Below are positions 2,455 through 15,713 of a stretch of 64,000 nt of DNA, in pieces. Below the pieces are notes generated by a model that searched no databases, was not told where the DNA came from, and saw nothing but the letters and a program-made list of their open reading frames with translations. The stretch lies in assembly GCA_907165135.1 (NCBI GenBank), contig OU015568.1, forward strand, positions 10,540,001-10,604,000, in the 5' to 3' direction. Both the position numbers and the translations under genes were made by a program. The DNA comes from Oikopleura dioica. Its lineage: Eukaryota > Animalia > Chordata. Each line of letters opens with the position of its first letter. The first letter of the stretch is position 1.

Positions 2455-5400
2455 TTAAACTTCCGAAATGAGGAGACTATCGCTGGCCCTCGAGTTCCTT
2501 ATCGGCTGAGGTCGATATTTGCCGTATCCATTCTTTGCCATCGAAATTTGAAGATCAATGAGAAGCTGCTGTGCGCGGCTCTGATGTGCCTGGTAGATTT
2601 TCTCCACACCTTGCAGAGCGTTCTTTTCTAACTAAAAATATTTGTTAAAACACAGCGGGGGATCGTAGATAACGTAGAAAATACGCGTACGGTTTCTAAA
2701 CAAAATGACATGTACTTGCAATTATTTCTGAACTTTTGGATTTTTCTATTAGAAATTTTGGGTTTTAGAGAATGTTTTAGTTGACAACCGAAAATCTGGA
2801 TTGAAAGTATTTTTGCCTTTTGAAAAGAAAAAAATCAGTGGGAGCGGGGCGTTATTTTTCTTTGGCGGTGGTGGATTCGCCTTAGCTTGATAAATGGCAG
2901 TTTTACCTTGTCAAAGTTTCTCGTGAAGGTGTCGCGGCGCTTCACAGTCGCCTGTCGCGCTGCTGATTTGAGCCCCTGCTCCGTTGAGAGTGTTGATCCA
3001 GCACTAGAAAAAGATATGACGTTACGTTCATGAAAACGGTTTCTCGCAAGCATAAGTTCAACGATTAGCTATTCAAGCTAGCGAACGTTGCGTCGGCTTA
3101 TCACTGGGCGCCGATAAGATAACAAATTAAAATTAGCATAAGTTATAACATTTTTTCGAATTACCTAATCGACTTCGAAGAATCGAACATTTCAGCATTT
3201 TCATCTTCAGAGGGAAGGTATCCATAAGTAAGCTTATCTCCAGACTGAATAAGCTTCACTCGTATAATCTTCTCGACACGTTGAGGCTCAGCCCTCAGGC
3301 TAGAATCTGAATGGCCAGAATCCGAAGTACATCGAGGAATCTTCGACTCTGCTGTTGGAATCGACGGTATTCGATCTTTCTGAAAAGAAAAGCGTATTCT
3401 TCAGGTGTTCAAAAAGACGGAGTTTCAAATTTTAAAATTCAAAAACACGAATTTTCACAAAACATCTGGGCGAGGATTTCCAGATCTCCAGGAATAAGAA
3501 AGTTAGCTGACTCACCTTGCGCTCTGTAACGAGCTTGGTACAGTTATCCGACAGAGAAATGGCACTTCTGACAAAATCGTCGATGTTCCGCCTGAGAACG
3601 TGTTCTACTTTCTACGATCAAAGGGATTTCAGACTTGAAACGTTTACAAAGTGCTTTTTTCCTAAAGTAGAACCTTTCCTTGGCCGTTCGATAATCTTCC
3701 GTTCTGGCTTTTCTTCCTTTTCAATCGTCTCAATTCCTTGTCTCAATGGAATTTTAAAAGTATCCGCCACAATCTTCTCCACCTCCTGATCAATCTCTGC
3801 CGAGCTCCGGTACCCTTCCGAGCTTTGTGACATTTCTGAAGAATTTTCTTGACTCTCTTTTTTTTAAGAAAAATTTGCATAGAATCGAAACCAAAGCTAA
3901 ATTTGAGGAAAAAAAGGTGCGATGGAAGGAGAAAATGAATCGCCTGGCATCGATCATCAGCCTGACAATTTTAGCTTCGGATTTCAATAAATTATTCGTC
4001 TTACTGCTTATTCATTTTTCTTCAAAGAAAAATTGATCAATACTAATAAATTTCATTACATCAACAATATCTTGACAACGGTTAAAGGACCGGTTCATGC
4101 TATTATCACAGAAAATCACCGATTTTCCAGTAAGCTTCTTAGCTTTTTAGAAAGCTGAAAAAACAATGTCCTTGACGGTCTCTCAAGGCGATTACAGTAA
4201 TCCGTTAATTGCTTTACTCAACTAAGGTAATTACCTGGCTCCGAGTCTTGTGACCTCGTCTTGCTGCTTTCTCGCTCTTTTGGCGCGGCGACCTTGACGG
4301 GCTGAAAACGAAACGTTTAGATGTAGGTCACGTGAAGTTTAGGGAACGTAGGGCCAGGAAGGAAAATGCCTCGCCGCGCTTCCCATGCCTAATTAGTTTT
4401 ACTACAGGAAGAAGAAGAGGGCGACGTTACAATAGATGACCAAAAAGTCATTCCAAAATATTTCATCCCATAATTTTTCTTTACATATTTTTCGATGATT
4501 ACTCAATTTTTGAGTTGCATTTTAGCAAAAAATAAAGTTTAATTTGGAAAACGTTCAAACATTCCGTCAAACGAGGACGTAACTAAATTCCACTGTTGGA
4601 TTATCCTCTGAGTTAGTTCCCTCCCTAGCTTGACCGGGAGTATTTGTTTCCCATGTGGAGGGGGGTTAGATTTCCGCACGTCTGTTAGACTGACCTTCCA
4701 CTTTTTGGCTTCGCTCTCGAAGTCGCTCCATGATTTAGGAACGCTGTGGTGGCTATCTTGTGACGAGCTTCGGAGTCGAACGCCGGAATCGATGGACAGG
4801 AAGCCTTGAGATGCTGAGCTTGTTGTTTGGTCATCAACTGGACTTGTGCTGGAGATTTGGCGAGGACTTGGAGAACGAACTTCGATCACTGGAACTTCTG
4901 GTTCGGCGAACTTCGATTCCGCCTCTTGATGATTGAGCTCTTCTGAGGTGATTAAGGAGGTAGAAGGGGATGGAGGATCAAACTCGATCCTGATCTGGGC
5001 TGGCAACTCAATCGGCTAAAAAGCTTCTTTATTTCTAAAATATCAAAAAAGAGTGGCGCTGAGAGCAAGTTAATCTCGCACCCCGGATCTCTAAGAACAG
5101 TCCCAGCTTGAGAAGAGCGTCGAGTAGAGCGCTGATATTTCTCAAAATATCAATTTCATGTGTGAGGAGAAGGGGCCAATCTCAAATAGCAATAATGGTG
5201 ATTTGATTTGATAGAGTGGTCGAGGAAGAGACCGCGAAAGGAGAAAATGATGAGTTTTGGGTTTCTCGAGGACGTCAGAATGGGACGAGGTCTGCAGGAT
5301 TTCGAATATTATTTTCAATAAAGAAAAGTTTGCCTAAAATCACCTCAGTGTTTGCTTGATTTCCCCTCAAAATTGATTTGCGTTGGATAAACATTAAAAT

Positions 5401-6378
5401 CAGGCTCTATCAAAGATAAAGCTAATAGAAATTTCTAATTTCAAAACTCACAATTCTCAAGAACTCTCCAGGAAGTCGCTTCATTTGGGGGCGACAGAAT
5501 GATATATTTTCTCAAGCGAAAAGAGCGAAAATTTTTCTTTATCTCGGTAGCGCCCGATCAGTCAAAATAATTGAACCCTGAGAAATTCGAGAATGTAGTG
5601 GCGGTGGTGTAATTTTCAAATTTTCGCCAAAACAGCGCTTCAAAATCAGCGACTATTTCCGCGGGCATAATTCCGTAATTTCACAGCAACCCTATTCAAC
5701 GACTTCTAATGTGATCACAGAGCTTGTTTGAAGATCTGTTTATTGTGGCATCAAGTAATGGACGCGAGAATCAATAACTTTTATGTAATCCCCTTTGTTC
5801 TCCAAATATTTTGAAAGTTGTGCGTCAGTTTTATGTCGAACTGCTATCATCCTTTTTTGTTTAGCTTCTATGTTTCTAAGCTAAAATCTGATTTTCTAGG
5901 AAAGCATCTTGAGAGGCAAATAGAATAATTACAGTAAAGCAAAGTAAGGACCGAAATTCAAGCGCTTGATTACCAAAAAAGCAACAAACTTTCAAGAGCT
6001 CCCTCTTGCTTACCATGTTTTCAGCCTTTTCGGGAATTTCAAGAGCCTCAGCTTCAGTAATCAGCTCGAGATCATTTACTCCAGAGTCGAAGTTTTGACG
6101 AGCGCACTCGACTGGTTCTTCATCTTTTCTTCTTCCGTTGTTTTTGCTTGAGCTTCTGGCCGGTTCTGGCTGGTTCTTTGAGGAGTGGCAAGAAGAAGGT
6201 CGAAGTCGGAAGAGTCGGTTAAACTTCCGTCCGAGTAGGTTAAACTGTCGGAATAGGAAGTGTATGACGAGCTGAAAAAGACAGTTTTAGACAATTTTTG
6301 TTTGTTAGATTGATGTTCAGAGATATAAAGATAAACAATCAAGGAGTTGATAGAACTGATCCTTTTAGCGCGGTCCAC
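2455..6378 (-). CDS. Multi-exon hypothetical Ser/Pro/charge-rich protein
   Basis: Consecutive exons splice in frame at GT-AG sites (KKHF|KVEHVLRRNIDDFVRS...ERK|KDRIPSIP...SKSIS|AGSTLSTEQ...NFDK); ORFs 4539-5006 and 6076-6378 are on the same strand. No recognisable domain; start and last exon uncertain. Confidence 0.5.
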
Positions 6379-7210
6379 AAATACGCGAAATCCTTCCCGC
6401 TACAACTTCGGAACGTGCGTGCCCGCGAAATCCGGATAAGAACGACCTTTTGAATAGGATCTTATACGTAGCTATCGTATATTAGGAGTAAGAAAGAATT
6501 TCTAGGTCATAAGTGGTCGCATTTAATTGCCCTAATTAGCTGTGAAGAGCGGTAATTATTGGCGCATTCGGTTCTTATCGCTTTGCAAAGTTGAAACTTG
6601 AATGCAATAAAATCATTAAAAATTCGCAAAAACCAAGATGATAAAAATCGAAAAAGGTGCATCAACATGGAAAGGGTTCATCCTTTGCGGTCGGTGGTTG
6701 TTATTACGCCGACATTTATGTCTAAAGGTGGCATGAGTTGTCACGATTAGAACTCGCACCTTCCAAACGAACGCGTCGAAAAAAGGGAACAAACCTGGTG
6801 AAGCTCTCAGAATCACTTAAATCGCTCATTCTTCACTATTCATAAAAATGCTTCTGAGAGTGGAAATATATCTCTAGAATCGGTAGAATCTGCCTGCGGG
6901 CTAGCGCGATATTCAAAATGTTTAAAAAATGCGCCATATTTGCTGGGTCAATTTTTCTGGCACCGAAACAATAAAATCGCAAATAGAAGGTGGTCAAAAT
7001 TGACTTTTCGATTTCACAAAAGAATCGATCGTAACTATTTTAAGTAAAAGTGCTAGCCCTTCCCTTAATTAATCTTTGATCTTCGTTTATATCTCTTATG
7101 ATTTTCTTTTCTCTAAGTTTGTTTTTGAAGGTATAGAAATGTTACTGTAGCAAATTTAATCAACGTGTTTCAATTTCAGCTTTTTTGCAAAAAAAAAATC
7201 CGAGCGGTCG

Positions 7211-7305
7211 GTAGCATCACCGCCAAGGACGCGCGATCGTGGTGGTGCTGCGGCGCCACCGAAATCGATCGCGCGGGACTTGGGCGAAGGGACCCGTGAC
7301 GCTAC
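7211..7305. other. GC-rich imperfect inverted repeat (about 95-nt hairpin)
   Basis: gtagcatcac (7211) pairs with gtgacgctac (7296-7305); gccaaggacgcgcgatcg pairs with cgatcgcgcgggacttgggc; inner ggtgg/ccacc stem; AT-rich flanks. Confidence 0.6.
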
Positions 7306-8614
7306 TACGTTCCCACTGAAAATAGTCTTCTGATAAGAATTAAGCTCCCATTGAGCATGATAACGTTTGGGGTCGTTTCAAATGCCTGCTGCGTTAATTT
7401 CATGTTGATAATATAATTTATATTATATAAACGTACCTTTATTAAGAAATCTAGCGACCGTTTTTCTCCTTTTTTTCTATCTATTTTTGATCTTGCTTTG
7501 TTGGAAGAGGTGGACTCAAGCGGAGAGGTGGTATTAATTGAACAATTGTTTGAAATGCCACAAGTTTATTTCTCAGAATTCGAAATCAAGGAAGACTTGC
7601 TCTTTCACTACAGCTTCTGATTTAGAGGGAACATACTTTTACTGTAAATAACTTTTATCTAAGAGCAGATGTGTTGCTTATAAGTGTACCACGCTTTGCG
7701 GGAATTGATGATAGTTATTGAAGGACTTATCGATAAGTTATCGGCCTAAAACACATGAGCTCAGGTGGTACACGATAAACTATCAGCGGGAGAAATTAAA
7801 TAAAGTAAAAAAATAAATTACTATAAAAAGTAAAATTGAAGCCAGCGAGTTCGCTCGAGGAAGTTTAATTCGATTTGCTCCGGTCTGGATAATCTTTTTG
7901 GATTCTCGAGAAAAAACGGTGCTATGCAAATTTGCTTGGAGTATTTTGAACTTCTGCTTTGGAGGATTATTTTGAGTTCTCTAATCTCGTATTATCAAGT
8001 AAATGCTCAAGAGGGTACTTCACGGTTTGAACATATTACGTGTCCGAAGGATTAGATGCGTAGAGGGCGGCTATTATTCAAGAAGCACAGCCTTTTCAGC
8101 ATCGAGTGTAACAAGAAAAATGAAATTTATTAAAGAATATAAATTGATTTCTCTTTCATCGCTTTTTCTTATTGCATTCATTCACTCCTCTTGAACCAAT
8201 ATTGTCTCATTAAGACTTTACTTAATTATTAAGTTGTAGCTTCATTTATCGCTTCGTCATCATAGCATGTTACTATTTCATAAAATTTTTAGGTTCATTT
8301 CGATAATCCCAGCTTTTTCAGATAGTCTCCGCCTTGGTTTTCCTGCGGAAATTCTTTAACTACTCAAAAATAACATCCTCATTAAAAGAAAACTTTGAAA
8401 TTCTTTGTTGATGTCAGCCAAGAAAGAGCGTAGTGGTCTACACTCGACGCAGGTTGTAGGTTAATGATAAGTCATTCTTTCATTATGTTCAAGTATTGAT
8501 TTCAAAAAGCAGGAAAACTTGGTGAGGGATGAAATTCTAGTATCTCTAATCCGGTTAATTTTCCAATAAAAGACAGCGCGCCATGTGGCACTCATTCAGA
8601 GAGATCGTAGAATC

Positions 8615-10121
8615 ATGAAGATAGCTTCAAGTTTTTCGATTTTTTCGTGCATTTATGCCCAGGTTCCTCTCTGCCATACAAGAGTTGAAGATGCAGCTTG
8701 TCTAGAATATGAGGGAAGCGGTGCAGGAGATGGATCAGCTGGAGGCCCTGATTGCTTACTTTACGAAACTGTCGTAAACGATTTGAGCGGTGGAATATTC
8801 GCTGTTCAGGCACCTTACAACGGAACAATTTGCAGAAGATCTCTTTCAATTCCTGGGTGTCAGATATTCGAGGGCTTTGTCAATGGTGTATCAAGCTTCA
8901 CTGGGCTCATTTCTCATGAATTTGAGTTTCAAGGAAATCCAATTTCTGTGACCCTCCAATGCAAAGATATCGGTAAGGTTATAGGAATAAGATTGATCTG
9001 AATCTATTTTAGATTGCTTTGATGGCGCAAATGGAGGCTGCTCGCACTTTTGTAACAGTAACAATTCTAAACATTTCTGCGAGTGTCCGAATTGTTGGGA
9101 ACTCGACGGGTATAAAACATGTAGGCCTGAAACTGGAAGAATCAGAACTGCCTGTGGTCCAGAATACATGTCGGTTGACGTTGACAAATGCATATTCCAC
9201 GACAAAAGGTAGGACAAAACCCCAATGAATAACTTATTAAGTTTATGTACGATTCTAGTTTGTCATATGCCGAGAATTTGAACCTTCGATGGGATAGCTG
9301 GATGAGCGACTGCGCTCGATTCAGAGACAACAACGCCGGAGCTTCGCGTTCGATGACCACACGTCTAGACAACTGCGGAACAGCAGTATCACAAGAAGGA
9401 GAGGAAATTGTCTTTCGAAACAAAATCATCAGTGGTTCTCGATTCAACGAGTACAACATCGTCCTCGATAACGCAGTCGAACTTGGGGTAATTCATCTCA
9501 TCGAAATCAGAAATTTCTGTACGAGGAATCTAACCAAAAATTAAGGTCGAATGCCGCTACAACACTAATGCATCAACGAACACTGCGATAATTGAAGTCG
9601 AGTCAATGGCAGTTACAGGAGGTGCTGTTGGCTACGGCTCTTTTGCATTCAACGCACAGTACTACAACGATTTCACATTCTCGACTCCAGCTGACAGCAA
9701 TAACGTCGTGGTCGTTGGCGAGCAGCTTTATCTAGCTATCGAGCCTATTGCTATCGTCAATGGCGTTAAGGCAAGTTTAACAGAATAAAGCTGGTGGGAG
9801 AGATTTTGCTTTAGTGGTACATCACGGACTGTACAATACACGATGACCCAAACGATGCTGACCGAACATTTCCGATCGTCGCTAATCGTTGCCCGAACCC
9901 ATTGATCGTTAAGACATACAACTCCTTCTTGAACACTCACAGCTTCGACATGAGCTACACTGCTTTCCAATTTGAATTCGAAGGTGCGAGTTCTTTCTCA
10001 AATTCATTTCAATAAGAATATCATTTTAGGTGGACTAGCGTCTTCACAAGCTGAGCTTTTCCTGACCTGCGAAATAACTGTCTGCCTTGATGGAAACTGT
10101 CCAAGTGACCCGACCTGCTGA
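8615..10121 (+). CDS. Secreted EGF-like + zona pellucida (ZP) domain protein
   Basis: Signal-peptide-like start MKIASSFSIFSCIYAQ; EGF NGGCSHFC...CECPNCWELDGYKTC; ZP-N LDNCGTAVSQEGEEIVFRNKI; ZP-C WYITDC, NRCPNP, FDMSYTAFQF, LFLTCEITVC. Five short introns incl. GC-AG at 9771-9814; stop at 10119-10121. Confidence 0.9.
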
Positions 10122-10322
10122 GAGTATATCTATCATTTTGCAAATATTACATTGTTTCGATTTCGCTGATAAGACTTTTCGATTATCAACGTCAATTTAA
10201 TAAAGCTTCGTATAATTTATTGAAGAGGAAAAGCGTAAAACCGTCATCATTCAGGAACTATCCGGGGTTATGAATATTTATAGCGTTCTTTGTCGCGAAA
10301 TAAGAGAAAAATGCTTCAAAAT

Positions 10323-10649
10323 TCATAGCCCGTTATTGTCATCAATCACAAACTCGACAAGACCGTTTTCCAAGTTGAGAACTGCCCAAAGAGCCAGTTC
10401 GCCCATCGAGCAGATAAATGTTACGGACACAGACGAAAGCGAGAACTCGGATAACTTCTTCGTTGATATCGTTTTTCCGGCAGCGGAGGAGATACTCTTG
10501 CATTTTTCAATAAACTTTGACATTTTTTGACTGTTGGTCGTGGGATAGTAACAGGTAGAAGGGTTAAAATGAATTGACGGCGTCGTGAATGATGGGGAAA
10601 GGGAAGTCTGATTTTGTCCTGAAGGTTGAGTCGGAATTACGGACGTCAT
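10323..10649 (-). CDS. Small hypothetical protein downstream of YARS
   Basis: 108-aa ORF starting about 255 bp after the YARS stop on the same strand; no recognisable domain; may have a further short exon. Confidence 0.35.
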   Translation of the reverse strand: MTSVIPTQPSGQNQTSLSPSFTTPSIHFNPSTCYYPTTNSQKMSKFIEKCKSISSAAGKTISTKKLSEFSLSSVSVTFICSMGELALWAVLNLENGLVEFVIDDNNGL

Positions 10650-10904
10650 TCTCGTGAAAGTTGATTTTTCCTTTGAGTACGTGAGGATTGATTTAAAATG
10701 AGTATCTTACCGTGCGGAGTGCAGATTGCCTCAAAATACGGGCTGAATTACCGACTCGATTCATGCTCTCTAAATACGAGAATCAAGAATCATGGAAGTA
10801 AAGTATTCAGTGAATACTATTCACCTAACCCGGGCAAAGCACTTTTAAACCCATACAGTAACAATCACATAACAGGTCGACAGAGAAAAATAATTTTCCA
10901 GAAA

Positions 10905-12976
10905 TTATTTGATTTGAACATTCTGCAGACTTTGCGCTTTGATTGCTCCTTTTCCTTTCACTTCCCAAGTGACTCCCTAAACGCAAATAATCTAAGGCCG
11001 AAACATAAAGCTACTAAATGACCTTGTAAGTAGCTTCCAGAGCATCGTTTGTTTTCAGATCTGGAGCGACTTGTTCAAAAGCAGAAACTTGCTTCTTCGA
11101 AGATGGTTTGATGATAGCATCGGGTTCGCCTTCGAATCCAGCGACGGTGACGATATCGCCAGGGACGGCACCTTCTGGTGGACACAAAATTTCAACCTTA
11201 TAATTTTCACATCTTGGAGGCCTAGTTGATCTTACCTTATCAGGAGTAGACGCACACATGACCATAGCTTCCGAAAGAATGCCTCTCATTTTAGCGGGCT
11301 TCAAATTGCACAAAATAACAACCATTCGATCTTGCATCTCTTCCAGGGGAACGAATTTCACTAATCCAGAGATAACTTGTCTCGGTTTATCCTCGCCACA
11401 ATCGATTTCTTCCAGGTAAAGGGCATCTGCATCCGGGTGCTTTTCGCATTTTGTAATTTTTCCTACTTTCATTAGTAACCTAGAAGATCGAATGAAAAAG
11501 GAAGAACGTAAAACTTCAAACCTTGAGATATCAGCAGGCTTTTGAGGCTCAGCTTCCTTTGGCTGTTGCTTTTGCTTTGGTTTAGGCTCAACGCCTTCAG
11601 GTCTGATATTATGTTTCTTCTTTTCTTTCTTCACTTTTGTAACTTTTTCAACAGGATAGGCATTTGCAGCTAATGTTTTCATTTCTTCGGATTCGAATTT
11701 CTTGATGATAGGAGCAAGGAGACGATCGATAGCAGCTCCCACAGAGTTTTTCAGATCACCAGGATGGACATTTTTATTCTGAAAAGGTTGATCATGTGAT
11801 CTTTTCAAGTGAGTCTTACTTTGAAATCATCTTCGAGCTCTTGGAAATCCTTGTAAATTTTGTTGCCGCCCCATTCTTCTTTTCGCAAGACTTCGAACTG
11901 TCCGTGGCATCCGAAGAGCACGTGCTTAGTGAATGCGAGAGGGCCGTTATTTTCGATGTTTCCTTCCTCGCAGAAAGCCTTCTTCAGCTTCTTTTTAATT
12001 GCAGATGGAGGGTCGAGGAGATCGATCTTTGAATCTGCTTCGGACGAAGACATCTTAGTACCGGTGAGGCCAGGAACCATGGGGTTCATAAGATGCGATC
12101 GTTTCGCGTATCCGAGCTACGAAAATATTGAAAAATAGTGACTTGCAATGATTTCTACCTTGGGGAGATTTTCTCGGGCGTACATGAAGATTTTTCTTTG
12201 ATCAACACCACCAAATTGAACATCGACTTTTAGGTACTCCTCATCAAGCGCTTGGAGACCTGGGTAGATGAGTCCAGAAAGTGGAGCTGAATCGGATTGT
12301 TTGACGACTTCGGCTCCAGCCTTCTTGGCGTCTTTTTCCGTCACGATGGTTGATAGTTTATACGCATCCAAGGTGTATTCTTTGGAGAGTTGGTAATCCG
12401 TGCCCTTGACAAAGGAAAGCTTGTCCAGCGGTACGCCGATCGATTCAAGCATTCCGGTAATACACTTTTCAGCGATTCAAGATCACGTGCTACTATAAAT
12501 CCAAATAAAGCTTGAAATCGGACCCTTTCCTCTCGGTAGTACTCGACGCGGTAGTTGATCAGCTCCCATGGTGCTTTCATGTTATCTAAACGAAGCGTAA
12601 TTGGTTTAGAAAGGGATCAGACAAGGTTGGATTACCGAGACACGCGTGCAGATCAGCAAAGAGGATCTGCACTTCGCAGCCAGCGCGCAGAAAGTCGGCG
12701 ATTTTCGACATTGGCACAAAGTAGGCGATGTGAGGCTTTCCTTCACGGAGATATTTTGAGAATCATTATGAGGGGAATCTCAATTTTCATCGATAAATTA
12801 TTATGGCGACATCAATAAACATCCCTCCCTGTGGTAGCAGTACCCCAGTAGATCTTCACGCTTCTCTCAGCCAAAATAGCTTTGATCTCATTTTCGCCAA
12901 CAACTTCCTCCAAATTTCGGGTGATGAGATTATATTTTTCGTCGACCGAGAGCTCAATCGCTGCACCCTGTGCCAT
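10905..12976 (-). CDS. YARS1: Cytoplasmic tyrosyl-tRNA synthetase with C-terminal EMAP II-like tRNA-binding domain
   Basis: [15 protein letters not shown] (HIGH-type), [36 protein letters not shown], then in the same exon a Lys-rich linker into KHPDADALY...[10 protein letters not shown]. Nine exons; last exon [26 protein letters not shown] at 12976 preceded by tttag. Confidence 0.97.
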
Positions 12977-14059
12977 TCTAAAACGACCCATCAGATTTGC
13001 TTTCAAAAATATTTCCTGTTAGAGTACAAACTGGTAAGTTACGACACAAATTGTAACTGTACCTTGGATCAGTGGGCAAGTTGCTGCCGAATTTGGCGAA
13101 AATAGTTTTGTACCAACGCAAGAGGTTGGGAAAACCGGCGAAAGATACGTTTTTGCTACAGTAAATCGCCAAAAAGAGGCAGATATCTGCTGGGCCCGGT
13201 CGCTCGAGGACGAGATAAGTGCGTGTCGCGAGAGTTCTCTCCAAAGACAGCAAGTAAACTCTCAAATCGTCTAGCAGCTAAATTCTAGAGCTATGAAAGA
13301 CGAATCGGAGGGAAAACGACCTTTAGAGAAGATAATGGGATAATTTGTTGTTCTCCGATCGCGATAAGGTCGAGCGTTTTAGCCTAGAAGGAATGGGAAA
13401 GTTTGAAATCTTAAATAAGAATTGGACACCCTTAAATCAATTCATTCCCATTCCTGAGTCCCAACCGAGCTCGTGCGGTACTGAGACCAAATAAATTCCG
13501 AGCACTTTTCCGATTTGAGCGACAGGTATTCCATCTCACTCTAGGTACAGTCACCGCGTAAAAAAAAAGGAAACAGGGACAATCATAAATCATGATGAAG
13601 AGGGCTGTTTGTATTTTGGAGTATCACCGAAGACAGAGAGTGGAAATGTTCATCGAATTGTTTTTCAATAAAATTTAATTCTAGGAGAGTGCGTGCGAGT
13701 GACGGGGAAAAAAGGAGGTTGAAGCTGGAAGTTGGAGGAACTTACGGGATTCTGGACGCCGCTCGGCGAATTATTAAAATATTTTCTTTAGGAAGAAGGC
13801 GGCTACACGCTTTTAACATTCTAAACTCGATCAACTCAGATAGAAAAAATCGAAAAAATACATTTATGCCGTCCGTCGTCCAGAAAGTTTCGCCCCGTTT
13901 TTTTAAAGAAACATATCAGGAGTAGTATCAAAGAACAAGAATTGTGTTTTTAAAAACGCTCTAATAGTAATAATAATTAAAAAAATTTCAACAAGAAAAA
14001 GACGGAGAGTAAATGGCAGAGTAAAAGAAACGACCAATTGTTTAAAAAAAATATTGTAT

Positions 14060-14400
14060 CTAGGCTTCTTCGTCGAGGAAGGCGCGGAGTTTCAGAAGAA
14101 TTTCATTTTTGATCTCAGCTGGTACTTGGTCTCTTCCGATCGGCGTTACTTCGTTCACCAAATCGTCGATCGAGACGTTTTCAATACTCGACGCGCGCAC
14201 TTTTTCTAAATAAATCAGTTTACTTTTTCACAAATTTGTGTTGGCCAACCTTTGCAAATCTTGCGCATGGAATCGGTCCATCCGCATTCTTGGAGTCTGT
14301 CTCTCAGCGTCTGTTTGAGCTTCTCAAGCTCGCCCGAGTTTTGCAATTTTGCGTGGAGTCGATCTTTGAAATCAGCTTCGCTTTCACGAGAATCCGCCAT
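14060..14400 (-). CDS. ENY2: ENY2/Sus1 (SAGA DUB module and TREX-2 subunit)
   Basis: KLQNSGELEKLKQTLRDRLQECGW...VSIDDLVNEVTPIGRDQVPAEIKNEILLKLRAFL; one phase-1 GT-AG intron. Confidence 0.92.
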
Positions 14401-14450: not shown

Positions 14451-15713
14451 TTAATCTTGTGAGTAAGAAAATCTAAAGGAACTGTACTGGGAGTTTCCCA
14501 CTTTCGGATTTTCCGAATGATGGCAGTTGTAAGCTAGAGTGTCTGGGTCAGATAAATTAGGGTTCAAAAAGACGTAGCCTATCATAAAGTCGCTTGTAGT
14601 GTGCAAATACTGAAGTTCTATTCCGCCTCTTCCGTCATTCAGCAGCTTGAGGAATCCAAGCTCGATGCCGGTGTTCGAAGAACTTGGAAAATTTGAAGCG
14701 ATAGAGTGAGAGTCAAAAAGAAACTCCTCCGAACAAGCGAGTCTGGCAGTATTGTGGATGATCAACTCTTCGCCGCAGCCAGAACACGTGGTGCAAGAAT
14801 CTTCCTGCGACCAGAATCCAGCACCAAGATGAGCGGCTGATCCGACTCTTCCATTTCTTTTGACGACGAATCCACCAGAACTTGAAGCAGCGACGGAATC
14901 GGATGAATACTCTTCGTTGTTATCATTCTTCTCGATTTTCATCGCTACGGCTCCTACCGTGTCACATGACTTTTGAATCTTCTCAGGAGGCCCGTTTGTT
15001 TTCTCAGCTGCTCGTTTTAGGACTTTGGAGTACTTTTTGAAGACTTTGAGCGCTTTCTCAGCGATGGGCAGATCTTCGCGATAGCTGATGTTGTTGTTTT
15101 TGGCGAATTGCTCAGCACCAGGGCCGGAAATTAGAATAGGAGGGATGCGTCCTTGTTTGTCCTTGCCTCTGTCAGTCGGGGATGTATTAAACCTGCTCAG
15201 GTGTGGAAACGACAATAATAAACATCAACAAATTTCACACTTTTCAAACATGTAAATCTCCGTGCCTAGATTGGAGCTCTGCAATTTTCTTTGCCACTTG
15301 AATCGGATTGAGAACATTATTCAGGCCCGAAACGGCGCCGTGACCTCGCTCCTCGACCCCGCCGATTCTCTTCGTAAAACTCAGACCGGCTTCGTTTTCC
15401 CTCTTGCCAGTTTCGGTCAGATTTCCTCCATGGCCGGCATTTGTCACGGAATCGTTTTCAAGGACGGAGACAATTTGGGAAATCGCTTCCTGGAGACACC
15501 CATTTGCCAGGTATACACGCACGCCTGAATGTAAAATTTTATAATTACGCATGGGAACGCAGTTTTCATCAATACGGATTATTTTATCGTCTCTACAAGT
15601 TTAAAAATATAAAACTGACCCTCTTTCAAAGCTGTCTTCAACAATTTGACATGTCTGTCTCTGTTCCTCTGGGCAATAAATCCGGCGCCAGTATGCGCAG
15701 CAAGGACGATCAT
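14451..15713 (-). CDS. TASP1: Threonine aspartase 1 (taspase-1)
   Basis: AAHTGAG, LENDSVTNAGHGGNLTETGKRENEA, GRIPP, autocleavage site D/TVGAVA, SSGG...GRVGSAA, CSGCGEELI; three exons. Confidence 0.92.

Follow-up and report, generated by a model that had tools for sequence, protein, structure and literature searches.

Known synthetase appendices and the Oikopleura locus

Domains appended to aminoacyl-tRNA synthetases are usually taken to be stable acquisitions, made step by step and serving as markers of animal evolution, and the EMAPII-like tail of tyrosyl-tRNA synthetase (TyrRS) is the textbook example. OB folds of the Trbp/EMAPII type take hold of tRNA at its single-stranded 3' CA end, and a homologous domain is found in AIMP1/p43 (pro-EMAPII), which serves the multi-synthetase complex of animals as a scaffold and as a tRNA-binding cofactor. 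The subject here is the cytoplasmic TyrRS gene of the appendicularian Oikopleura dioica, which lies on the minus strand at 10905..12976 of a 64,000-nucleotide stretch of contig OU015568.1 (GCA_907165135.1, positions 10,540,001 to 10,604,000), referred to below as the window. Very probably this enzyme has lost its YARS1-type C-domain and has in its place the 3' half of AIMP1/p43, copied from the gene of its own lineage; AIMP1 itself was retained. No report of such a swap between TyrRS and AIMP1 was found in the literature searched.

Metazoan YARS1 (1NTG) and the Oikopleura enzyme have in common a class Ic core, an anticodon-binding domain, a linker and a C-terminal Trbp/EMAPII-type OB fold. They differ in that the Oikopleura C-domain sits on the AIMP1 branch and is not an orthologue of the YARS1 C-domain, and in that the linker is long and Lys-rich in Oikopleura and short in YARS1. 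The Oikopleura protein is also ~25 residues longer than the ~525-residue insect enzymes. Most similar to its C-terminal module are the homologous Lys-rich region and EMAPII domain of AIMP1/p43 (4R3Z, 1E7Z, 1FL0), but in the Oikopleura TyrRS the module stands without the N-terminal helical/leucine-zipper region and is fused in cis to the synthetase.

A p43-derived module in cis at the C-terminus of a class I synthetase is likewise present in one animal lineage, in the methionyl-tRNA synthetase (MetRS) of Caenorhabditis elegans (Rhabditina). There p43 is reported to be fused whole to MetRS, with no free p43 (Havrylenko et al., reviewed in PMC4394549); the fusion holds MetRS in the complex and mediates its assembly. 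Oikopleura would provide a second animal case of an AIMP1 module on a synthetase and differs from the nematode in that a resident paralogous domain was displaced, only the tRNA-binding half was copied and a free AIMP1 was kept. Arc1p, plant MetRS and the lysyl- and methionyl-tRNA synthetases of Entamoeba employ the same OB fold with an adjacent basic region as a general tRNA-binding cofactor, in cis or in trans (PMC11286949, PMC3226552), but these appendices belong to more distant branches; they were acquired independently and took the place of no resident paralogue.

Origin of the C-terminal domain

The first-pass annotation of the window had proposed that the C-terminal domain of this TyrRS is of the AIMP1/p43 type and not of the YARS1 type, and that it was taken from AIMP1. 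Scores against solved structures, a gradient of identities, the linker and a small insertion bear out the first proposal; the trees, a topology test, the insertion and the identity gradient bear out the second and narrow the donor to the appendicularian lineage's own AIMP1.

Similarity searches used the stop-free stretch 11023-11478 of the minus strand, which comprises exons 7 and 8 and 13 intron-encoded residues. Pfam tRNA_bind (PF01588) matches the C-terminal open reading frame (ORF) at 5.7e-30; PF01588 and the solved EMAPII domains cover both the OB fold and the C-terminal pseudo-dimer subdomain, and the last TyrRS exon aligns to the AIMP1 C-terminus. In a phmmer search of the PDB the human EMAPII/AIMP1 chains scored 157.8-160.4 bits (E 2.5e-46, query residues 3-152), the human TyrRS C-domain (1NTG) 131.1 bits and yeast Arc1p 103 bits. 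Among 1.84 billion cluster representatives there were 6954 matches, and the best 150 of the 6954 were nearly all free AIMP1-type proteins of ~300-350 residues with the domain at the C-terminus and identities of up to 71%. Those named among them included the AIMP1 of house-dust mite, cockroach, locusts and crayfish, and a TyrRS core was present in only two of the 150. The best non-appendicularian AIMP1 reached 185 bits against the window, arthropod TyrRS C-domains at most 147 bits. Identity to the window domain was 78-92% for appendicularian TyrRS C-domains, 76-81% for 42 appendicularian AIMP1 (80.6% for that of O. dioica), 59-74% for 37 named AIMP1 of other animals and 44-60% for 192 canonical TyrRS C-domains, nearly all of them from arthropods and one from a fish.

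Eight alignment columns separate AIMP1 from canonical TyrRS C-domains. The window has the AIMP1 state in 6/6 of the columns that it covers and P0377, a full-length cDNA-derived TyrRS described below, in 7/8, with neither showing the YARS state in any column. A 4-residue insertion (IKP(T/S)xKKxxSxFEQ versus NPKKK----IWEQ), which in the window copy lies in exon 8, occurs in 47 of 440 domains, and the carriers are 5 appendicularian TyrRS and 42 free appendicularian AIMP1 (that of O. dioica, P0402, included) and no other of the 440. It is a clean marker shared by the AIMP1 and TyrRS genes of appendicularians.

Phylogenetic analysis was by maximum likelihood, with a larger tree of 108 rows (LG+C20+F+G4 with posterior mean site frequencies, PMSF) and a smaller one of 57 rows, mostly named sequences. 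Canonical YARS C-domains (23 rows in the larger tree, from arthropods and a fish) formed a clade with support of 100/99, and of 99/92 in the smaller tree, and the window domain fell outside it. The appendicularian TyrRS C-domains also formed a clade (100/96 with 108 rows, 96/93 with 57), which was joined with appendicularian AIMP1 in a clade inside animal AIMP1 (100/99 and 100/100, respectively), and the appendicularian branches were short (0.01-0.14). Since this joint clade lies inside AIMP1 and far from the canonical YARS C-domains, the direction of transfer was from AIMP1 to TyrRS. When all TyrRS-attached C-domains were forced into one clade the log-likelihood fell by 66 and the constrained tree was rejected by the approximately unbiased (AU) test (p-AU 0.0105). 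Such a phylogeny had been suggested as a check in the first-pass annotation, with a grouping among animal YARS1 C-domains set in advance as the contrary outcome; the domain groups with appendicularian AIMP1. The other contrary outcome named there, that an AIMP1-like state is general in invertebrate TyrRS, fails on the arthropod TyrRS C-domains, which are not AIMP1-like.

The C-terminal domains of four MetRS (P0014, P0055, P0087, P0104) and of two proteins of glutamyl-tRNA synthetase (GluRS) type (P0033/P0066) fall inside or near the animal AIMP1 clade, with the MetRS fusions P0014 and P0055 inside it in both trees. Because of these positions it appears that AIMP1 modules have become fused to synthetases several times.

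Free-standing AIMP1 and other appendicularian sequences

A genome search for a free-standing AIMP1 had also been suggested, and the gene is present. The profile search returned P0402 ('Oidioi.mRNA.OKI2018_I69.XSR.g13257 [Oikopleura dioica]'), a protein of 310 amino acids with PF01588 as its only domain, encoded at a locus (L005) on OU015569.1, a 12.96-Mb record labelled XSR in GCA_907165135.1, separate from the TyrRS locus in the window. As its N-terminal 130 residues are colinear with cockroach AIMP1 (E 5e-5), P0402 is, judged by this alignment, the bona fide free-standing AIMP1 of O. dioica. The AIMP1 N-terminus, taken from P0402, gave nothing significant in the window by tblastn. The C-terminal part of the TyrRS has an EMAPII domain and a Lys-rich region that belong to the AIMP1 branch, and the region N-terminal to the linker is, on sequence grounds, that of a TyrRS, so that the gene is not itself an AIMP1.

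The same search returned ~40 further P0402-like proteins of ~320 residues from marine metatranscriptomes. The taxon of the metatranscriptome sequences was assigned from the spliced leader and from similarity to O. dioica. Some of the AIMP1-like proteins (P0378, P0381) open with the spliced leader in translation, THPIFESDFDCLT, by which their mRNAs can be recognised as appendicularian. Three more TyrRS with an AIMP1-type C-domain were recovered (P0377, P0424, P0451), and four metagenome contigs (L001-L004, one of them a TARA scaffold), with 67-75% DNA identity to the window, carry the tail of the TyrRS anticodon domain followed by an AIMP1-type domain, with intron positions that are partly different. 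At least three or four appendicularian lineages, divergent from one another, carry the swap.

In the database proteins the translated leader, LSNR-M in P0377 and MG-THPIFESDFDCLT in P0378/P0381, is an annotation artefact. Within L005 4001-13108 the O. dioica AIMP1 gene extends over 7.9 kb, owing to a single intron of ~6.5 kb (4933-11419), although the genome is otherwise compact. On the same strand, ~100 nt downstream of the gene, a 318-residue protein with GST_N-type Pfam matches is encoded, and the two may form an operon.

Gene structure and expression

The TyrRS gene has nine exons and ~552 codons, all on the minus strand: exons 1-3 at 12976-12827 (boundary +/-3), 12738-12636 and 12585-12530; exons 4-6 at 12464-12159, 12116-11820 and 11778-11522; and exons 7-9 at 11479-11236, 11196-11023 and 10976-10905, the last including the stop codon (10907-10905). 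TyrRS proper, that is the catalytic Rossmann and anticodon-binding domains up to ...AANAYP, occupies 11653..12976. It is followed by the Lys-rich, AIMP1-like linker at 11522..11652, assigned by comparison of linkers and with its Lys-rich stretch in exon 6, and by the EMAPII-type OB-fold tRNA-binding domain of AIMP1 origin at 10908..11479 (exons 7-9). G+C in the window is ~41% and introns are roughly 40-90 nt. Searches with the window were run exon by exon, P0377 serving as the full-length stand-in.

Pfam tRNA-synt_1b (PF00579) matches exons 4 and 5 (8e-16 and 3.2e-13), the signature motifs are PHIAY (HIGH-type) and KMSSS (KMSKS-type), and identity of the exons to springtail TyrRS is 59-88%. 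The gene has the features of a eukaryotic cytoplasmic TyrRS of class Ic, and its conservation suggests that the enzyme would activate tyrosine and charge tRNA-Tyr with it.

P0377 is the protein called on L006, an 1801-nt cDNA-derived contig of a close relative, from a marine metatranscriptome. The nine-exon model follows from the match of the exon translations, in order, to residues 5-556 of P0377 at 89-100% identity, from RNA contigs of the plankton metatranscriptome run X1, which contain the splice joints 10975/11022, 11476/11519 and 11778/11820, and from a gap in the alignment to the PDB chains that corresponds to the 13 intron-encoded residues. Every peptide quoted in the first-pass annotation can be read on the minus strand at 10905-11700; two of them are interrupted, one by a 39-nt intron (11235-11197) at STPDK/VEIL and the other by a 46-nt intron (11022-10977) at ATYK/GVTW. 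Its description of an anticodon domain running without a stop into a linker and an OB fold holds for the genomic ORF 11014-11808, which stays open and in frame through two small introns, with the last 23 codons lying beyond the third intron.

At its 5' end L006 has 29 nt identical to the 3' end of the spliced leader, joined to AATG..., and the same leader sequence was seen as a loose end on reads; this 5' end was identified from what we take to be the full Oikopleura spliced-leader sequence. Because the leader is joined directly before the start codon, the TyrRS mRNA is trans-spliced at the AG 12979-12978, within an acceptor (ttttAG/A, 12977..12979, minus strand) that abuts the ATG at 12976. 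The poly(A) tail of L006 starts ~100 nt past the stop, after ...GAATAC aligned with 10803, which gives a predicted 3' untranslated region at 10803..10904 on the minus strand. TyrRS is expressed as a leader-trans-spliced, polyadenylated mRNA. In raw-read runs with the same species label (X9-X11) the reads are 90-95% like the window and cover TyrRS poorly.

At least two TyrRS introns are non-canonical, which suits O. dioica. Intron 12826-12739 is GA-AG after ...YYRE, as fixed by the cDNA-derived P0377, and intron 12529-12465, after ...TATTG, is GG-AG or GA-AG, its exact boundary being ambiguous.

Extent and proposed mode of the replacement

TyrRS-type sequence ends at ...AANAYP (~11653) and is Lys-rich linker thereafter. 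The linker of appendicularian TyrRS, KKEKKK...P(A/V)DISRL, resembles that of appendicularian AIMP1, KPKKEKK...KP(V/I)DVSRL, whereas the canonical TyrRS linker is short and non-basic and ends (I/L)xPxRLDIRVG. Because the linker is of the AIMP1 type and unlike that of canonical TyrRS, the copied block appears to consist of the linker and the entire EMAPII domain, ~200 residues in all, and the junction would fall within roughly the first 10-15 linker residues.

One intron, of phase 0, is common to the two genes (ATFN/DVAW in AIMP1, ATYK/GVTW in TyrRS); the other introns differ. Two other lineages have an intron adjoining the junction (KKG/). In the ancestor of the sampled appendicularian lineages the Lys-rich linker and EMAPII OB fold of AIMP1 would have been copied onto TyrRS, and illegitimate recombination at the DNA level or exon shuffling may have put the 3' half of AIMP1 there, a mechanism that would fit both the shared intron and the introns next to the junction. 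The TyrRS C-domains of four lineages form their own clade and do not pair with the AIMP1 of each lineage, which argues for one old event and not for ongoing homogenisation. A relic of the canonical C-domain was sought in the window and none was found.

Alternative explanations and the upstream GST-C-like unit

From the AIMP1-type domain the first-pass annotation had gone on to deduce a reorganised multi-synthetase complex. The N-terminal region of p43 is reported to anchor it in that complex (PMC4394549, PMC11286949). A free AIMP1 of 310 residues persists in O. dioica, and the copied part is the linker and OB fold, without that anchoring region, so that a reorganised complex is not supported. 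A broader version of the idea holds that the AIMP1 module, a long isoform with a GST-C-like domain, or both tether TyrRS to the multi-synthetase complex or to that of eEF1. This version is unlikely on account of the retained AIMP1 and the missing anchor; it does have observations and precedents in its favour, the latter being the C. elegans MetRS-p43 fusion and the presence of Toxoplasma TyrRS in a complex (PMC4394549).

The observations concern a GST-C-like unit (Pfam GST_C, 2.9e-7) directly upstream on the same strand, with exons at 13534-13454, 13383-13321 and 13277-13063 and possible further exons to ~13819. The unit is expressed, RNA joints at 13276/13321 and at 13382/13453 support its splicing, and a loose end of the spliced leader at 13542 goes with a leader site at ~13541. 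If the donor after 13063 is joined to the acceptor at 12978 the frame, by reading, continues into the TyrRS ATG; alternative readings end the unit at a TGA after a 47-nt intron or at a TAG overlapping the acceptor. Many insect and crustacean TyrRS isoforms, of ~600-620 residues (e.g. P0205, P0223, P0263, P0293, P0155 and P0243), have an N-terminal domain of ~90 residues that matches Pfam Arc1p_N_like. The profile of these extensions matches the eEF1B-beta N-domain (PDB 5DQS_D, 3.8e-20) and AIMP3 (1e-8), which suggests that they could dock to eEF1-gamma or GST-type partners. A profile of 42 arthropod N-extensions had as its sole match in the six-frame translation of the window the GST-C-like ORF (E 0.0023). 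The unit, which is no part of the swap itself, may be a separate upstream cistron of an operon, with a fold like that of AIMP3/eEF1-gamma, or it may be homologous to the N-extension of arthropod TyrRS.

There is a small chance that cis-splicing joins the GST-C/eEF1B-beta-N-like unit (13534-13063) in frame to the beginning of TyrRS and so yields a long isoform. Against it, the sole full-length cDNA, L006, has the leader right at the ATG and no GST unit, and no read spans the junction of the unit with TyrRS in the runs examined, including X9-X11, with their poor TyrRS coverage. The only database protein that looks fused, P0446, appears to combine a crustacean TyrRS 5' part with an appendicularian TyrRS 3' part; its first ~100 residues match crustacean long TyrRS (e.g. 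P0222), and it is probably a chimeric co-assembly and not a fusion of a GST tail to TyrRS. Nor was the identification of the unit as AIMP3/p18 established, the PDB giving only eEF1-gamma (E 0.056) and the Atlas only generic GST_C. For membership of TyrRS in the multi-synthetase complex, through association with AIMP2, AIMP3 or GST-domain partners, the upstream unit is circumstantial evidence only. If the long isoform were real, the protein would run from a GST-type docking domain through TyrRS and the basic linker to the AIMP1 OB fold, like Arc1p/p43 with a synthetase inserted. The docking domain would then tether TyrRS to the network of GST domains in the multi-synthetase complex or that of eEF1, and the arthropod long isoforms would point to an old, overlooked bilaterian feature.

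Piecemeal overwriting of a resident canonical C-domain by gene conversion from AIMP1, possibly repeated in the manner of concerted evolution, could account for the 77-81% identity of the Oikopleura paralogues, for their common intron site and for the failure of the trees to resolve the order of the TyrRS C-domain clade and the AIMP1 lineages. It is nevertheless improbable. Canonical and AIMP1-type domains are only ~50% identical as proteins, which leaves too little DNA similarity for conversion to start, and the non-homologous Lys-rich linker was transferred as well. There is also no mosaic (0/8 diagnostic columns in the YARS state), and repeated conversion would be at odds with the separate clade formed by the TyrRS C-domains of four lineages.

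That there was no swap at all, the C-domain being a YARS1 orthologue which looks AIMP1-like because AIMP1 evolves slowly, because vertebrate YARS1 evolves fast or because this is the general invertebrate state, is very improbable. The two domain types are paralogues, 44-60% identical, and arthropod TyrRS C-domains do score up to 147 bits against the window, but all 192 canonical domains are less similar to it than is any AIMP1. The window also lies outside a strongly supported canonical clade, the constrained tree was rejected, the insertion and AIMP1-type linker are common to TyrRS and AIMP1, and the short branches make long-branch attraction unlikely. A chimeric join of TyrRS and AIMP1 made in assembly or annotation, in favour of which nothing was found, can be dismissed with near certainty, as the same linkage recurs in L006, an independent cDNA that is spliced and polyadenylated, and on four metagenome contigs that come from other lineages, the joints are seen in RNA of run X1, and AIMP1 lies at a separate locus with a different sequence.

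Some caveats must be applied to the displacement of the YARS1-type domain by an AIMP1 copy. Of the three or four introns just one is common to the two genes, and that one may predate the swap. The canonical TyrRS C-domains come from arthropods and one poorly annotated fish protein, the human PDB chain entering by score only, and the non-vertebrate deuterostomes are represented by appendicularian TyrRS alone, so that within tunicates the swap may be older than the sampled lineages. The branching order of the TyrRS C-domain clade and the individual appendicularian AIMP1 lineages is not resolved, and the bootstraps fell short of full convergence (correlation 0.888 and 0.982). The genome may have a second TyrRS gene, of the canonical type, at another locus, and the role of the module in capturing tRNA-Tyr, although the most likely one, is drawn from knowledge of the family.

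Selection on the module and its proposed function

Substitution rates at nonsynonymous (dN) and synonymous (dS) sites were estimated exon by exon against the L006 cDNA and then summed, with synonymous sites near saturation. Exons 1-5, which encode the TyrRS core, gave dN 0.011 and dS 1.72 (dN/dS 0.007), exon 6, with the tail and linker, dN 0.065 and dS 1.22, and exons 7-9, with the AIMP1-derived domain, dN 0.035 and dS 1.43 (dN/dS ~0.025). By these ratios the AIMP1-derived domain is under strong purifying selection and appears to be a constrained, working part of the enzyme.

Studies of the OB folds of Arc1p and AIMP1 have shown that the adjacent basic region is needed for robust tRNA binding (PMC11286949), and OB-fold appendices increase the aminoacylation efficiency of the synthetases that carry them (PMC11286949, PMC3226552). 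In the Oikopleura TyrRS the OB fold would hold the tRNA 3' end while the basic linker contacts the body of the tRNA, the module being a general tRNA-capturing appendix that acts in cis and should lower the Michaelis constant (Km) for tRNA-Tyr. The swap may thus be seen as the displacement of a domain by a functionally near-equivalent paralogue which brought with it a stronger basic linker.

The textbook TyrRS tail would then have been discarded in one chordate lineage, with the AIMP1 paralogue and its linker put in its place and afterwards strongly constrained. This natural domain-swap experiment argues that selection has kept the tail for generic tRNA capture by an OB fold and a basic region, and not for YARS1-specific features such as the cytokine-related ones studied in mammals.

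Neighbouring genes and other TyrRS architectures

Upstream of the GST-C-like unit on the minus strand are an ENY2/e(y)2 gene at 14062-14400 (Pfam EnY2, 5e-12) and a gene of the Asparaginase_2 family at 14451-15552. These two, the GST-C-like unit and TyrRS are closely spaced on one strand and may constitute one operon.

A four-exon TyrRS profile search did not return the Oikopleura protein, its top matches being P0285-P0287. The proteins P0285-P0289, of 880-905 residues and from Homarus americanus, Procambarus clarkii and others, have two TyrRS bodies in tandem and a single EMAPII-like domain at the C-terminus, and in P0286 and P0287 the second TyrRS copy diverges at conserved motifs.

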